A DNA stretch of 64,000 nt from Prasinococcaceae sp. CCMP 1430 (taxonomy: Eukaryota; Plantae; Prasinodermophyta). Both the position numbers and the translations under genes were made by a program. The DNA is taken from positions 11,280 through 75,279 of the forward strand of contig RQSC01000520.1 of the NCBI GenBank assembly GCA_013416795.1. Direction: 5' to 3'. Positions 17,516-60,140 of the stretch are shown here, in pieces. Numbering within the stretch: the stretch's first letter is position 1; every line of letters starts with the position of its first letter. Under the pieces are notes generated by a model. The model was not told where the DNA came from. It made no database searches and saw nothing but the letters and a program-made list of their open reading frames with translations.

Positions 17516-18220
17516 TCATCGCCGCCGCGGCGCGGTGGCCAGGATGGCGGCGGCCATGGCCGCGGCGCCCACCGCGAGGCCCGCCGACGCCGCCGGCAGC
17601 GCGTACTCCCACAGCGCCGCGCGCTTCGACTCCGCGCGGAGCCTCTCGGTGCCGCGGCGCGTCTCCGTGCGCCACTTGGAGTGCATCTGCTCCTCCACTC
17701 GCAATCTCTGTCTGAGCCGCGCGGCCTCGGCGGCCAGCTTGGAGCGCTCCTCGGCGTACTCCGCCTCCGCCTCCTCCCGCGTCGCCGTGGCGGCCGCAAG
17801 CGCGCCTCGCCACACGCCGTCGCGCGCGGCCGCGGCGGCAGAGAGCCGCAGCTCCAGCTCCTCGGTGCGTGCCTCGGCCTCGCGCTGCAGCGAGCGCGCC
17901 TCCTCGGCTTCCGCGCGCGACCTCGCCGCAGCGTCGAGCGCCTTGCTCAGCTGCGCGAGCACCCGCTCGAGCGCCGACGACGCCTGCGCGGGACCCGCGC
18001 TCGCCGCGCTGCCGTAGCTGTTTGAGAACGATGACGAGAGCGACGCCTCGGAGAGCGTCTCGCACGCGTCTGTGTACGCGTCATCGCCACCGCACGACGA
18101 CGTCGCCTGTGATCTGTTGCCGCCACTGCCCGCGCCGGGGACGGGCGGCTGCGCGTGCCCAGCGAGCTGCTGCTTGTGCGACANGTCGTAGAGCGGCCGC
18201 GCGGCGTGGGTGCTCCTACC
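17516..18220 (-). CDS. Hypothetical coiled-coil protein with C-terminal tail anchor; 5' end unresolved
   Basis: Ser-rich region, long E/A/R heptad segment and hydrophobic C-terminus LPAASAGLAVGAAAMAAAILA followed by PRRR. One N at 18184. Confidence 0.5.
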   Translation of the reverse strand, partial: GRSTHAARPLYDXSHKQQLAGHAQPPVPGAGSGGNRSQATSSCGGDDAYTDACETLSEASLSSSFSNSYGSAASAGPAQASSALERVLAQLSKALDAAARSRAEAEEARSLQREAEARTEELELRLSAAAAARDGVWRGALAAATATREEAEAEYAEERSKLAAEAARLRQRLRVEEQMHSKWRTETRRGTERLRAESKRAALWEYALPAASAGLAVGAAAMAAAILATAPRRR

Positions 18221-54576: not shown

Positions 54577-55827
54577 TCATTGCGCCTGGGCGGGCGGGCG
54601 CCGAGTGAATATGTCAGCTCGATGTCATCCAGGGGTCGACGTCAACTCGCGGGCTCGCACCCTGATGCACGAGTCGCCGGGCGCGCAGCGCCTCTTCCCC
54701 CCCACACGCTCCATGAGGGCGATGTGTTCCCATCCCATACACCCCCCACACACCCCACACCCCGCACCACTTACCCTCAGGGCGGCCTCTGCTTCCTCCG
54801 CGAGCGCAACGAGCTCCGCGGCGCTCGCGCGGTTTTTGGGGTCTGCTTGCAAGCAGCGCTTGACGAAGCGCTCGATGCGCTCCGAGCTGCGCGCCGCTGG
54901 CAGCGCATCGTACGCGCAGTTGACGATGGCGCGCCCGAGCGTGTAGTAATTGAGGCCTGGCTTGTCGAAGGGCGAGCGCAGCGCCGCCATCTCGTATGCC
55001 AGGCAGCCAAGCGACCACACATCGCTCGCGAAGTCGTACGGCTTGCCTCTGATGACCTCGGGGCTCATGTAGAAAGGTGTTCCCACCATCGACTGCAGCT
55101 CGACCGTTTTGGACGACATCACGCGCGAGAGGCCCAGATCGCCAAGCTTGACTGTGCCGTCGGACCCCAAGAAGACATTGCTGGGCTTGAGATCCCGGTG
55201 CATTACCCTCCGCGAGTGCATGTGCGCGAGGCCACTCGCTGCCTGCCGCAGCACCGACCAAATCGTGTGCTCGGGCAGGAGCTCGGAAGCCAATGCCTCC
55301 CCATCGCTGCTGGCGCCGACATCGCCGGCGCCGACCCCGCCGCGTGCGGCCCCCGCGCCGCCCGCGCACTCCTCCCCACGCACCCTCGCGAGCAGTTTGC
55401 CGACGTCGCCAGCGTCTGCCCACTCGAGCACGATGGCCAGCTCGTTGTCCTCCAAGAAGCTGTCCACGTAGCGAACGATGTTGGGATGCTCAAGGGTCTG
55501 GAGCGAGCGCACCTCATTGACGCAGTCTGCGCGCCTCTCCTTGTCCATGATGGAGAATATCTGCACGCGTTTGAGTGCCACGCGCTCGCCCGTGCGCCGG
55601 TCGGACGCGCAGAAGACGGTGGAGTACTTCCCGGAGCCAATGGGCGCGCCGACGTCGTACTGCGAGAGGCGGCTCGACGAGCGAGGTCGCACGCCGCTCC
55701 CGCTCGCCCCGCTGCCCGACGAGCCGCCCGAGCACGACGTCACCGCGAGGGCGGGGGGCGCATCGTCCATTGACATGTCGAGTGCTGGCTCCTGCGCGTG
55801 GGCGGCGCCAGACATGGCCTCCTCCAT
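54577..55827 (-). CDS. NIMA-related kinase, NEK6/7-like; complement(join(54577..54585,54775..55827))
   Basis: IGSGKYSTV, VALKRVQIF.IMD..RADCVNEV, LEWADAGD, HRDLKPSNVF, DLGLSR, SMVGTPFYMSPE. The last exon is tentative. Confidence 0.9.
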
Positions 55828-56766
55828 CGCGCGCGCGCTTCGTCACTATCCCTAAGCGCGCACGCGAGCCGCAGCCGCAGCGACTACCTGATGAGTGTCA
55901 CCAGCGCAGCGCCGTGGTGGGTCTGTCGGGCGACTCGACGGGAAGCCGCGCGGCACCGCCCCGCCCCGCCGGCCGGGCGCCCCCTTTTTTCTTCGCCGCC
56001 CATTTCGCGCGCATTTACGCGCGAATATTTCCGCCCAAAACGCGCCCGCAAAAAAAAAGGGGGCCGGCGGGGGACCGGGCGACCAACCCTACGGATTGCG
56101 CCGCTCAATTTCAAAATGGCCTCGCGAGTAGAATGGCGAATGGGCTTTAAAAGCGGATTGGGAGGTGGACGAAATCGGATCTGTGGTATCGTCCGATCGG
56201 GGGGCGGCGACGCGACGCGCCGCGGCCACGCGCGCGGCAGCGCGCGCGACTCGTTGATCCGACCAGTCGTGGTGGTGGGAAGGGTGTGTCTCCGCGCGCG
56301 CCCGCCGTCGGGGAACCGGTCCCTCCTCAAAAAAATACGCGCAGGGCAAAACAAAACGCTCCTACCGTACATAAAAATCAACCGCCAACAAAAACCGTTA
56401 AAAAAGGGTATCACATCATCGCACCAATCCCAAATCGGCAAATCCATCGGAGCGGATCGCCCGGCGTTCGTCGTGGACACAACATGCCATCAAAAAGCAC
56501 CCGCGAAAACTGTGTTTTAACCACGGGAGAGATTTTTTGTCGTGCGTGCTGCCTGCGGTCTTCGGCGCAGTGCAATTTGACGTGCAGCGCCGCGAGGGCC
56601 GTTGGGGCGCTGGATGGGGGAAAATCTGCAGCGCGCGCCCGCACGCGCGCGCGCTTCCGATATCGCGCCGATGTGACGCGGCGGCGTGGGGCGCCACAGA
56701 GCGCACGCGCGGGGGGGTGGGGAGGGGGGTGAGGAGGGTTGGTGCCGCGTGTCATCGGCCGTGGAG

Positions 56767-58147
56767 ATGGCGGCGCCGCTGCTGCTCTTCTGCGACGGCG
56801 CCTCGCGCCGCAACGGCGCGCGCGCCAAGGGCGACAGCGCGGCCGCGGCCGTGCTGCTGGACGCGGCGACGGAGGCGCTGCTCGTGCAGCGCGCCGTGAG
56901 GCTCGCCGAGGGGACGACGAACAACGCCGCGGAGTACGAGGCGCTGCTGATGGGCATACGCATGGCGGCGGCGATCAGGGGCAAGAAGGCCGCGGTGCGC
57001 GCGTTCACCGACAGCGAGCTGCTGTGCAAGCAGTTCCACGGCGAGTGCGGCTGCAAGGTGCCCGCGCTCCAGGAGATGCTCAAGGAGCTGCGGCGCTCCG
57101 TGCGCATGGTCGGGAGCTTCTCGCTGCGCCACGTGCCGCGCGAGCAGAACAAGGCCGCCGATTCGTTGGCAAATGGCGCTCTTGACGAGCTTGATGTGGG
57201 CAAGTCGTTCACGATGGGGCCCGAGGCCAAGGATGTGCGCGCTGCAGAGGAGCAGCACGCAGCGGCAGTGGAGACGGTCGCGGGCACCTCCAATGCTGGA
57301 ACGTGCATCGTCCTCACGGAGGCCACACTCGCGGCGCACGAGCTCGCGACTGCCAAGCGCGAGCTTCGCATGTTCTGCTGCGACGTGCACGGGCCATTCT
57401 GGAAGCGTGTCGATGCTCACAAGCCCGTCGCGAGATGCTTCGGCGTGGCCGGCACGAGGGAGTGCTCGAAGGCAAAGCTCGACCCGTTGCCACGCAGGTG
57501 CGCGCGCGCGAGGGAGCGCGCGCGCGCGCGCGAGCGAACCGGCGCGTGCGACCGCCAGCGACTTTGCGTGCACTACTGACAGATGCCACGCGCGCGCGCG
57601 CGCGCTCGTGATCACATGCACGCCCTCGAACACCTCCAGCGAGGAGCGCGGCGAGGGGCTCTTCCATTGCACCACGTGCGGACAGAAGTGGGCAGACAAG
57701 CTGGCGAAGCGCGGTGTGCCTCAGCCGTGCCCCGGGGAGGCCCCGGACGGCAGCGAAGGCGAGTGCGGCACACTGGTCGAGCCGCATAAGCTGCGGCCGA
57801 TGAAGTCGCTGCACGCGCGCGCGAGATACCACCGCGAACAGAGGAGGGCCTACCACAAAGCTCTGTCGTCAACGAGCAGCGTTAGCAGTGCGGATTCCAC
57901 CTGGGTCAAAGTTGAGGGCGAGGGCGTTGGGGCCGGCGCCCCAGCTGCCAGGAGCGGTGGGCGGAAGCATCCACACCGTTCCAAGCATAAGTGCGCGCTG
58001 TGCGAGAGCGGCGAGTGCCGGCGAAAGCCACCGGCATCACGGCCTCACGAGTCGTCGGGCTCCACGATCTCTAATGCGTCCACCGTCAGTATGATGAGCC
58101 AGCTCTCCCTGAGCTATTTCAGAATGGAGACCCCGCCCGTCGCGTAG
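56767..58147 (+). CDS. RNase HI (archaeal/actinobacterial-type) fused to a Shiftless (SHFL/C19orf66, UPF0515)-like zinc-ribbon domain; join(56767..57497,57640..58147), 412 aa
   Basis: RNase H residues D10 (FCDGASR), E56 (TNNAAEY), D82 (TDSELL), H122 and D132 (NKAADSLAN). Then LTEATL, RMFCCDVHGPFWKRV..KPVARC, LDPLPRSEERGEGLFHCTTC, QPC..CG.LVEP and SRPHESSGST. Intron 57498..57639 is GT-AG. Confidence 0.85.
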
Positions 58148-58258
58148 TGGGCGTGGAGCGCGCGCGCGCGCGCGCAGACTAGCGGGAGCTCAGTGTGTAT
58201 AGTCTATAGTAGTACTACTGTATGTACATGAACGACGTGCCTCGTGACCAAAGGAGAC

Positions 58259-59900
58259 TCAGTGCTTCGTGACAATCGTGCGGCGCTCGGAGAACGCGTC
58301 AAGCGAGTGGTGGCCCCCCTCGCGCCCGAGGCCCGAGTCTTTCATTCCCCCGAAGGCAACGCGCAGGTCGCGCTGCAGCCAGCAGTTCACCCACACCGTC
58401 CCCGCATCAATGGCGCGCGCGATACGCTGCGCGGCCCCGCTGTCGCCGGCGAAGACGCTCGCCGCGAGGCCGTACTTGGTGCCATTCGCGAGCGCAATCG
58501 CCTCCTCCTCGGTGTCGAAGGCTTGCAAGCTGGTCATAGGGCCAAATGTCTCGTTCTGCGTGATCCGGTCGTCCTGCTTGGCGCCCTCGAGTACGCAAGG
58601 CGCAACGAAGCATCCTCGTTGGCAGCGCTCCGGGAGGCCGGCGGGCGTGCCACCGCCGCACAGCAAGGTCGCGCCATCGTCGGCAGCTTCTTGCAACATT
58701 CGGCGCACCTTTTCCACCTGATTAGGATGGATGAGCGGGCCGCATTGCGTGCGACTGTCCTCGGGGTCGCCGACAACGAGCTCGCGCGCGGCATCCACGA
58801 GCGCGCCGCGCACCTTGTCGTACACGGCGCGCTGCACCAGTACACGCTCGCAGCACAGGCAAATCTGTCCATTGTTGAGGAAAGCCGCGCGAGCGAGCTC
58901 CCGCCCCACCAGATCCGTATCGGCGTCCGCCATCACCACGGCCGCGTTCTTGCCTCCTAGCTCGAGCGAGCAGCGCTGCATCGCGCAAGGAGGGTGTGGC
59001 AAGCGGCGAGGGAGAGAGCGAGAGGAAAAGAGAGAGAGAGGGAGGGGAGAAGAAATAGAATGAGCACGGGCGAGAACGTGCGCACGACCGCGTCGCCGTA
59101 GCATTCGCGCGGACTGGCATCGCGAGCAGCACACGTGCACGCGGTCGCCAGCGCGCGCGCGCACCTTAAAGAGCCTGCCGCAGTGCCCGCCCACGATGCG
59201 GCCGGTGACCGTGCCGCCGGTGAAGGAGACCATCTTGACGCTCGGGTGCCTCACGAGCGCGTCGCCAGCGCACGCGCCACGGCCGTGGACCACGTTGAAA
59301 ACACCGGGGGGGATGCCCGCCTCGGCGACGATCTCGCCAAGCGCGAGCGCTGTGAGCGGCGACCACTCGCTGGGCTTTGCCACCACGGTGTTACCCATGG
59401 CGAGCGCGGGCGCCACCTTCCACGTCAGCAGGTACAGCGGCAGGTTCCACGGCGTGATGAGCGCGCAAACGCCGTGGGGCGAGCGCTCCTCGTAGTTGAT
59501 CACGCCGTCGGACAGATGCGCAGGCGTGGCGCCGGCCTCGTGGCGCACGAAGGATGCGAAGAAGCGAAAGTTCTCCTCTGCGCGTGCGACATCCACCACG
59601 CGCGCCAGCTGGCGCGGCTTGCCGCAGTCGAGGCTCTCGAGCAGCGCGAGGTCGTCGGCGCGGGCGACGATGGCATCGGCGACGCGGACGAGCGCGTCGC
59701 AGCGTCGGTCGACGCTCCAGCCGCGCCATTCGGCGCCCGCCCTCCGCGCGGCCGCCACCGCCGCGTCGACGTCCTCCTCCGAAGAGTCGGCGACGAGCGT
59801 CAGCTCCTCGCCGTACGCCGGGGCGATGTTCGAGAGGGCGTGCGCCGGAGCGCCGCCGCCGCCGCCGCCGGCCGCCGCCTCCGCCNNNNNNNNNNNNNNN
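58259..59900 (-). CDS. ALDH8A1: 2-aminomuconic semialdehyde dehydrogenase (ALDH8A1-like); intron 58976..59164; start lies in or near the N gap at 59886-59900
   Basis: ESLDCGKP, ITPWNLPLYLLTWKVAPALA (ALDH8 signature), FTGGT, SLELGGKN, catalytic NGQICLC, ETFGP and FGGMKDSGLGREG. Confidence 0.88.
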
Positions 59901-60140
59901 NCCGCCCCAGCCGCCCCCGCCAGCCAACCGCAGCGCCCCGCTGCGCCGCATGCGCGTGCGCGTGCGCGCGCCCGCGCGCGCAATCCCGACGCGCCTCTTC
60001 GTTGCGCAGTGTATCATACCCACGGGAAACTCTTTTTGGCCCGGCGCGCGAGTGCGCGCGCGCGCGCGCGCGCGCCCGTTTTTTTTTTTGCGCGCGCGTC
60101 AGTTCCCCCCTTCGAAAACGCCGAACGATGTGCATTACTG

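Follow-up and report, generated by a model that had tools for sequence, protein, structure and literature searches.

We investigated a two-exon gene on the forward strand of a 64,000-nucleotide stretch of contig RQSC01000520.1 (the window, meaning this whole stretch of DNA) from the prasinodermophyte alga Prasinococcaceae sp. CCMP 1430. The gene encodes a protein whose N-terminal half is a type-1 RNase H and whose C-terminal half is a module of the Shiftless family (UPF0515, PF15135). By exact-cluster match it corresponds to PRCOL_00002985 (EukProt EP00793_Prasinoderma_coloniale_P003611) of Prasinoderma coloniale, a member of Prasinodermophyta, a phylum of Viridiplantae, and near-identical genomic copies are present in a dozen metagenome and Logan assemblies. 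Residue numbers refer to the stored annotated protein, P0002, of 408 residues. The searches used the two exons separately and P0002, which is four residues short at the exon junction, the corrected spliced model having 412 residues. An earlier note, made from the letters of the DNA alone, had flagged positions 57304-58105 as a Shiftless-like domain outside animals with altered zinc ligands; this stretch is the C-terminal module of the gene, and the RNase H domain had been missed.

Against the Pfam UPF0515 profile, P0002 scored 33.1 bits (E 5e-8; curated cut-off 29.8), with residues 156-295 aligned to profile positions 61-191. Each exon alone reached 16 bits, which is below threshold, the two matches covering consecutive profile segments (60-144 and 150-192), and a metagenomic homolog of matching two-domain architecture, P0015, which is 45-50% identical to the algal protein, scored 57.1 bits. 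A core profile of 131 columns, built from the zinc-ribbon core of P0002 and P0015 and run against 1.84 billion representatives, retrieved 66 proteins at E ≤0.001, of which 54 are UPF0515 proteins by Pfam and five are repeat proteins with partial, weak matches. About 27 of the retrieved proteins carry, downstream, the signature H-x-C-x2-C-x2-G-x-C...H-x-S-[ST]-G-S-T, which is absent from the query profile and so provides an independent confirmation. The profile search did not converge on an unrelated zinc-ribbon family, the outcome that the earlier note had named as speaking against its domain call.

A profile of 25 sequences drawn from the retrieved set, with an origin known only for the alga and one amoeba, matched human Shiftless in the PDB (9kbo) with an E-value of 8.6e-31 over residues 87-264, the next match having an E-value of 0.006. 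The match is colinear over about 200 residues and includes motifs that are not zinc ligands, namely L-T-E-x-x-L, K-P-V-A-R-C, E-E-R-G-x-G and H-x-S-x-G-S-T. The AlphaFold model of residues 150-408 has a mean predicted local distance difference test score (pLDDT) of 81, with 92-97 in the zinc ribbons; in a Foldseek search of this model against the PDB, four 9kbo chains ranked at the top, three of them significantly (best E 2e-6, probability 1.0), and 9kbo was the sole significant fold. The module is thus a genuine member of the Shiftless family in a non-animal, as the earlier note had proposed.

Searches with shorter or broader queries gave less. With phmmer, exon 2 alone found chance matches only in the PDB (a pneumovirus nucleoprotein, E 0.38), so that the family profile was needed, and a word-indexed protein search with exon 1 residues 150-243 returned the gene's own cluster only. 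The broad profile A4 had at least 12 matches, and words from the Gly-rich spacer probably filled its candidate list. The 3CxxC-type zinc fingers (Zn_ribbon_3CxxC_2, PF17180; RTP and ZAR1 type) gave weak matches to the second ribbon, with 14.7 bits in the window protein and at most 24.5 bits in relatives; all are below the curated cut-off of 27, which makes them a lead on a remoter relationship and not a sign of membership.

The N-terminal half was recognised by Pfam as RVT_3 (57-58 bits; cut-off 21.6) and as RNase_H (about 30 bits, 29.8; cut-off 25.8). With phmmer, it matched LC11-RNase H1 (3u3g) at an E-value of 2.8e-11, the four catalytic acidic residues being aligned; D82 is marked by the D-to-N substrate-complex mutant 4h8k, and D10, E56, D82 and D132 are all invariant in P0015. 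In the full-length AlphaFold model, Foldseek superposed this domain on Halobacterium RNase H1 (4e19) with a template modelling (TM) score of 0.85 and a root-mean-square deviation of 2.3 Å. Its fold is common to the group of Sto-RNase HI, LC11-RNase H1, Halobacterium RNase H1 and Mycobacterium tuberculosis Rv2228c (2ehg, 3u3g, 4e19, 3hst; target-normalised TM 0.80-0.86), as are the four catalytic residues, at 26-31% identity. E. coli or retroviral RNases H resemble the domain less than do the LC11, Rv2228c and Sulfolobus enzymes, and some members of this RNase H subgroup are said to cleave double-stranded RNA as well. Like the algal protein, Rv2228c joins an N-terminal RNase H to a second domain; in the alga, however, the partner is a Shiftless-like zinc module and the gene is a eukaryotic nuclear one with an intron. 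We know of no description of such a module as fusion partner in the archaeal and bacterial group. With eukaryotic RNase H1 the protein shares the logic of a nucleic-acid-binding domain, a flexible linker and an RNase H, but the domain order is reversed, with the RNase H at the extreme N-terminus, and Pfam detected no hybrid-binding domain in P0002 or in the two exons. At rank 43 of the full-length Foldseek list stood 5dmr, a retroviral RNase H domain bound to the release factor eRF1, which we regard as mere coincidence; human SHFL has itself reportedly been found, by Wang et al. in 2019, to engage release factors.

Table 1. Features of the gene and of its neighbours (positions in the window; residues of P0002).
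Feature	Position	Strand	Residues	Description
Whole gene PRCOL_00002985	56767..58147	+		Two exons; ATG at 56767, stop codon TAG at 58145-58147; P0002 mapped by tblastn
Exon 1	56767..57497	+		Ends with ag, the first two bases of a split Ser codon
Type-1 RNase H domain	56779..57192	+	5-142	Catalytic acidic residues D10, E56, D82, D132
Acidic helical linker	57193..57312	+	143-182	Isoelectric point (pI) 4.6; predicted helix 154-174, pLDDT 58-72
Conserved helix L-T-E-x-x-L-x-x-H	57313..57345	+	183-193	Equals human SHFL 87-95 (family and hidden Markov model alignments)
Zinc finger 1 (ZF1), zinc ribbon	57358..57486	+		C205-x2-H208 (57379-57390), C224-x8-C233 (57436-57465); pLDDT 92-97
Intron	57498..57639	+		142 nucleotides, GTGCGC...CCAG, 74% GC, three (GC)n runs; between ZF1 and ZF2
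Exon 2	57640..58147	+		Stop codon included
Zinc finger 2 (ZF2), zinc ribbon	57641..57787	+		C250-x2-C253 (57668-57679), C270-x11-C282 (57728-57766)
Basic helix, then low-complexity Ser/Gly/Ala spacer	57809..57970	+	297-320 (helix)	Helix pI 11.5; spacer length varies in the family, pLDDT <50
Short zinc loop like zinc finger 3 (ZF3)	57986..58018	+		H356-x-C358-x2-C361-x4-C366; pLDDT ~92
Counterpart of the hyperphosphorylation loop	58046..58084	+		H376-E-S-S-G-S381-T382-I-S-N-A-S-T388; aligned to human H244...S249-T250
Flanking protein kinase	54625-55827	-		GC content at third codon positions (GC3) 0.84
Flanking aldehyde dehydrogenase, C-terminal exon	58262-58951	-		GC3 0.81

In the 2.0 Å structure of human Shiftless, residues 1-101 form a helical bundle, ZF1 is held by C112, C115, C132 and C135, ZF2 by C155, C158, C174 and C177, and ZF3, of the HCCC type, by H203, C205, C210 and C223, while a hyperphosphorylation loop (pS249, pT250, pT253, pS256) is buried and forms salt bridges to R126, K127, R138 and H244 (PMC12716391). 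The human protein binds RNA, for which the ZF1 arginines are needed (PMC9230503, PMC12716391). Binding of RNA, inhibition of -1 ribosomal frameshifting and induction by interferon are established for vertebrate members alone. The algal module has the same order of elements as human Shiftless (SHFL or SFL, also C19orf66, RyDEN and IRAV), that is, the L-T-E-x-x-L helix, ZF1, ZF2, the His-Cys3 loop and the H-x-S-S-G-S-T loop, and the linker that precedes its helix resembles the tail of the Shiftless N-terminal bundle (Pfam profile position 61 onward).

Hidden Markov model (HMM) and family alignments place C205, H208, C224 and C233, all of them zinc-capable, at the ZF1 ligand positions. The ZF2 equivalents C250, C253, C270 and C282 show no variation among the 25 relatives, and those of ZF3 (H356, C358, C361 and C366) are kept in 21-24 of the 25, with a spacing that differs from the human one and an HMM alignment that is loose there. 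The basic contacts are kept as well: K219 corresponds to human K127, R223 to the RNA-binding arginine R131 and K237 to R138, the positions of K219 and K237 being basic in 23-24 of the 25 relatives, and the counterpart of His244 is retained in the loop, whose H-x-S-x-G-S-T motif is invariant in all 25. On the other hand, the algal ZF1 has His for the second Cys and C-x8-C in place of C-x2-C, ZF2 has C-x11-C where the human protein has C-x2-C, and ZF3 is a compact H-x-C-x2-C-x4-C, whereas the fourth human ligand is distant.

These ligands bear on what the earlier note had described. The first knuckle does read C-x2-H (CCDVH), as C205-D-V-H208 in the forward frame, the widened pair RC-x8-C and the pair with an insert lie at C224/C233 and C270/C282, and the H-x-C-x2-C-x4-C loop precedes PHxSSGST, found as P-H376-E-S-S-G-S-T at 58043-58066. 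The numbering of the pairs needs revision: judged by the human structure, the "second pair" and the "third" are the second knuckles of ZF1 and ZF2, respectively, and the C250-x2-C253 pair, which follows the intron, had gone unlisted. Nor does the word "altered" fit the His ligand. Among the 25 relatives, 13 have His and 12 have Cys as the second ZF1 ligand, and over the 56 cores of the tree (human SHFL being left out of alignments and tree) C-x2-H is the commoner state (32, against 24 with C-x2-C). His in the first knuckle is therefore a widespread natural variant, and what sets the clade of the alga apart is only the widening of the spacers, with x7 to x10 in ZF1 and at least x10 in ZF2.

A regulator linked to translation, which would act on ribosomes at frameshift or stall sites as vertebrate Shiftless does and use its RNase H as an accessory or protein-binding domain, is a reading to which the presence of all the human ZF1, ZF2, ZF3 and loop elements lends itself. 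We consider it improbable, as the intact D-E-D-D site argues for catalysis and the helical bundle is largely absent.

The open reading frame (ORF) that starts at the ATG enters a GC-rich stretch, and a second forward-strand frame continues to the stop codon. The public gene model has its donor at 57486 (exon 1 ending at 57485), 12 bases upstream of 57498, and so drops the four residues L-P-R-S from P0002. In three homologs, D-P-V/L-P-K/R-S/E-E-E-R-G-E-G spans the exon junction, and the Pro that is dropped there is at least 90% conserved in the family alignment. The homologous locus L003 is colinear with the window and has no intron at this place, 148 window bases facing exactly 6 in L003; the position is likewise vacant in the homolog on L001. 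The 6 bases in L003 are what the junction 57497|57640 predicts, and with the residues that the homologs keep there this junction is favoured over the annotated 57485|57640; the intron at 57498-57639 is real, with boundaries fixed by colinearity.

The GC3 of the gene is 0.79-0.95, near that of its neighbours on the opposite strand (Table 1), in a window with about 68% GC throughout. This host-like codon usage, the host-type GC-rich intron and the presence of the gene in a named genome exclude animal contamination, which the earlier note had set down as a finding that would undo its proposal, and PRCOL_00002985 is a resident nuclear gene; the argument of that note from intron and codons to long nuclear residence is borne out. 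Alternating GC runs of at least 10 bases occur at 52 sites in the window and are frequent in introns and flanks (e.g. 56644-56654, 57500-57532, 57589-57605 and 58158-58175). Runs of N, which are assembly gaps, were seen at 59886-59901, inside the N-terminal part of the minus-strand aldehyde dehydrogenase gene, and at 18184.

We also tested, and rejected, the view that the gene is a chance or convergent zinc-ribbon match, an animal contaminant or a dead retroelement fragment, for which there is next to no probability left. In its favour, zinc ribbons are common and of small size, the 66 retrieved proteins include the five repeat proteins mentioned above, and RVT_3 is a name associated with retroelements. 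A chance ribbon, however, is contradicted by the colinearity over about 200 residues with non-ligand motifs and by E-values of 1e-8 to 1e-31, and a contaminant by a composition and introns which are those of the host. As to a retroelement, no reverse transcriptase is found near the gene among the window ORFs, and the best-matching relatives of the RNase H are not retroviral but free-standing enzymes of archaea and bacteria.

Fusions of RNase H and Shiftless-like module were found in P0002, P0015, the P0016 lineage and P0018, which form one clade (SH-like approximate likelihood ratio test, SH-aLRT, 98). The P0015 lineage is intronless, on a contig of 65% GC, whereas in the P0016 lineage (L003, contig of 69% GC) the RNase H is encoded upstream by two exons and by the beginning of a third, which continues into the Shiftless-like part. 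The intron positions thus differ by lineage, with the one between ZF1 and ZF2 in the window, two inside the RNase H in L003 (4173-4510 and 4763-4928) and none in L001:3525-4853, and no synteny exists between the window and the homologous fusion loci, whose neighbouring genes are not common to them. We hold with very high confidence the domain identities, the homology to human Shiftless, the conservation of the ligand positions and of the basic residues that contact RNA or phosphate, and the occurrence of the fusion in at least three plankton lineages.

A different nuclease is joined to the module in the amoeba Balamuthia mandrillaris. Its intronless gene P0052 (L005:5001-6968, GCA_031835245.2) encodes 655 residues with a 3'-5' exonuclease (DNA_pol_A_exo1, 80 bits) and a UPF0515 domain (97 bits); P0075 is likewise a fusion of 3'-5' exonuclease and UPF0515. 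As in the alga, the Shiftless-family module is C-terminal to the nuclease and has ZF1, ZF2, ZF3 and loop complete, but the nuclease is of another family, ZF1 is C-x2-C with short, animal-like spacers, the UPF0515 score is far above that of the algal protein, and the protein falls on another branch of the tree. The exonuclease fusion is a second, independent nuclease fusion, and with two such fusions to different nucleases the association of the module with nucleases is recurrent. The Balamuthia contig has 47.7% GC, and a NADAR-domain gene lies just upstream of the fusion.

Two other relatives have architectures of their own. The 2636-residue P0036, from a Logan assembly, contains about seven tandem Shiftless-like zinc-ribbon cores (e.g. 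1552-1659, 1652-1759, 2059-2171 and 2416-2538), and residues 36-95 of the Shiftless-family protein P0040 (441 residues) give a weak match to HIRAN, a domain that binds DNA ends (21.9 bits, below the cut-off of 24.7).

Further UPF0515 members were identified in the haptophyte Prymnesium parvum (KAL1519774.1), in the bolidophytes Triparma columacea and Tetraparma gracilis and on many plankton contigs; with the human protein, the family thus comprises members from Metazoa, Amoebozoa, Archaeplastida, Haptista and Stramenopiles. In the tree of the 56 cores, the algal sequence belongs to its own well-supported clade and not to an animal-like group, the deep branches being unresolved. With relatives of the domain present in haptophytes, in bolidophytes and in an amoeba, the module would be older than animals and interferon. 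Of the two alternatives offered by the earlier note, a pre-metazoan, interferon-independent ancestry is accordingly favoured on the sequences over horizontal transfer, which between protists still has some claim.

Such a transfer, in which Prasinoderma would have acquired the gene from another protist in place of vertical descent, would suit the patchy spread, the named non-animal taxa being one prasinodermophyte, one haptophyte, two bolidophytes and one amoeba, and also the three fusion loci without synteny and the lack of resolution deep in the tree. We nevertheless regard it as unlikely: codon usage and intron are host-like, and the members of the clade have diverged to 45-55% identity and differ in intron positions from lineage to lineage, which speaks for long residence. 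In searches of low sensitivity no viral relative was found: two IMG/VR pattern scans, weak negatives that used few exact peptide patterns, came back empty, and a BFVD fold search yielded no match at E ≤0.001. One GTDB genome pattern scan, an equally weak negative with few exact peptide patterns, returned no prokaryotic relative.

The explanation that we find best overall, and consider rather probable, is that the protein is an RNase H with an intact D-E-D-D site and a Shiftless-family module that tethers it. The N-terminal half is a prokaryote-type type-1 RNase H, and the C-terminal half comprises a conserved helix, two zinc ribbons (Cys-His-Cys-Cys in ZF1, four Cys in ZF2), a His-Cys3 loop and the H-x-S-S-G-S-T loop. 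In human Shiftless, that loop is phosphorylated and packs against ZF1 (PMC12716391). The algal module would bind RNA, for which human Shiftless has a nanomolar affinity, and the bound module would keep the RNase H on its substrate, so that the RNA strand of RNA:DNA hybrids would be cut. This inferred mechanism of RNA binding and nuclease tethering seems to us reasonably likely. As to its role, we propose tentatively, and with somewhat less than even confidence, a surveillance that is constitutive, independent of interferon and directed at foreign or selfish nucleic acids, for instance intermediates of retroelement or viral replication. An old RNA-binding module of eukaryotes might then have given rise to vertebrate Shiftless, which has no nuclease.

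Several results weigh against this explanation. Most of the N-terminal helical bundle of the human protein (residues 1-101) is missing in P0002, whose Pfam match begins at profile position 61, so that no more than its last helix or helices can be recognised; the Glu-rich C-terminal region with its nuclear export signal is also absent, the tail after the loop being short, Ser-rich and without an acidic run. Because both are missing, the properties of human Shiftless that depend on bundle and tail need not carry over. The TM-score of the algal model to 9kbo is low, at 0.33, which is attributed to long linkers, a differing domain arrangement, the missing bundle and a model of partly low confidence, and the full-length model has a predicted TM-score (pTM) of 0.46, that is, no confident or fixed contact between the domains is predicted. 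PADLOC assigned no family to P0002 or P0015 at E-values up to 0.1, and no viral or genomic defence context surrounds the gene, its neighbours being the kinase and the aldehyde dehydrogenase. Furthermore, P0018 (L006:2865-4715, JGI metagenome 3300037320) has Tyr for the last catalytic Asp and lacks ZF3 and loop, and nuclease activity is therefore not universally kept in the clade.

The same P0018 is the outlying member of the clade and a degenerate form of the fusion: its RNase H is incomplete or interrupted in the N-terminal part, and a tail rich in Gly stands in place of ZF3 and loop. The gene has 65% GC on a contig of 51% GC and may represent either a copy in decay or an unreliable gene call.

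The protein could instead be a housekeeping RNase H for R-loops or primers, in which the Shiftless-like module replaces the hybrid-binding domain and has no defence role. Such an enzyme would agree with the architecture analogous to RNase H1, with the hybrid-binding domain that Pfam does not find, with the ordinary genomic context and with the empty PADLOC result. It is the less probable role in our estimate, though a serious one, because the fusion occurs in one narrow clade only, unlike an essential enzyme, one member of that clade has lost a catalytic residue, and the sole studied member of the family is an antiviral RNA binder. Surveillance by the tethered RNase H is favoured over the R-loop role because the fusion is clade-restricted, nucleases are recurrent partners of the module and the family's one studied member acts against viruses.

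Shiftless is a broad-spectrum antiviral factor with a debated mechanism, inhibition of frameshifting, RNA binding and decay, and RNA granules having been considered. The literature searched treats it as an interferon-regulated gene, as the earlier note stated, and as a vertebrate one (PMC9230503, PMC12716391), and in the 2025 structure paper it is called "conserved from zebrafish to humans" and reported to have few structural homologs (PMC12716391). In the publications that name UPF0515 or related terms, none appears, by title and abstract, to cover a non-animal member or a nuclease fusion. The domain call itself lies within routine Pfam annotation, the relatives being precomputed in databases; what is new is the domain architecture, the spread of the family and the way in which the module maps onto the crystal structure.

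The occurrence of the whole unit of ZF1, ZF2, ZF3 and phospho-loop in algae, haptophytes, bolidophytes and an amoeba changes the picture of a vertebrate gene, here in an organism without an interferon system, as does its fusion, twice, to different nucleases. The His-for-Cys first knuckle, common in nature, provides natural variants for structure-function work, and RNA-guided tethering of a nuclease offers a testable idea on the ancestral activity of the family. More speculatively, and with doubt on our part, the Shiftless module may be an ancient RNA-recognition unit of cell-autonomous immunity, possibly as old as the last eukaryotic common ancestor, that was originally a targeting arm for nucleases, in prasinodermophytes for an RNase H and in amoebae for a 3'-5' exonuclease; the vertebrate form would be a nuclease-less remnant later placed under interferon control, and the switch formed by the buried phospho-loop would be equally old. 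The module would in this way add a case for deep, interferon-independent roots of animal innate-immune effectors.

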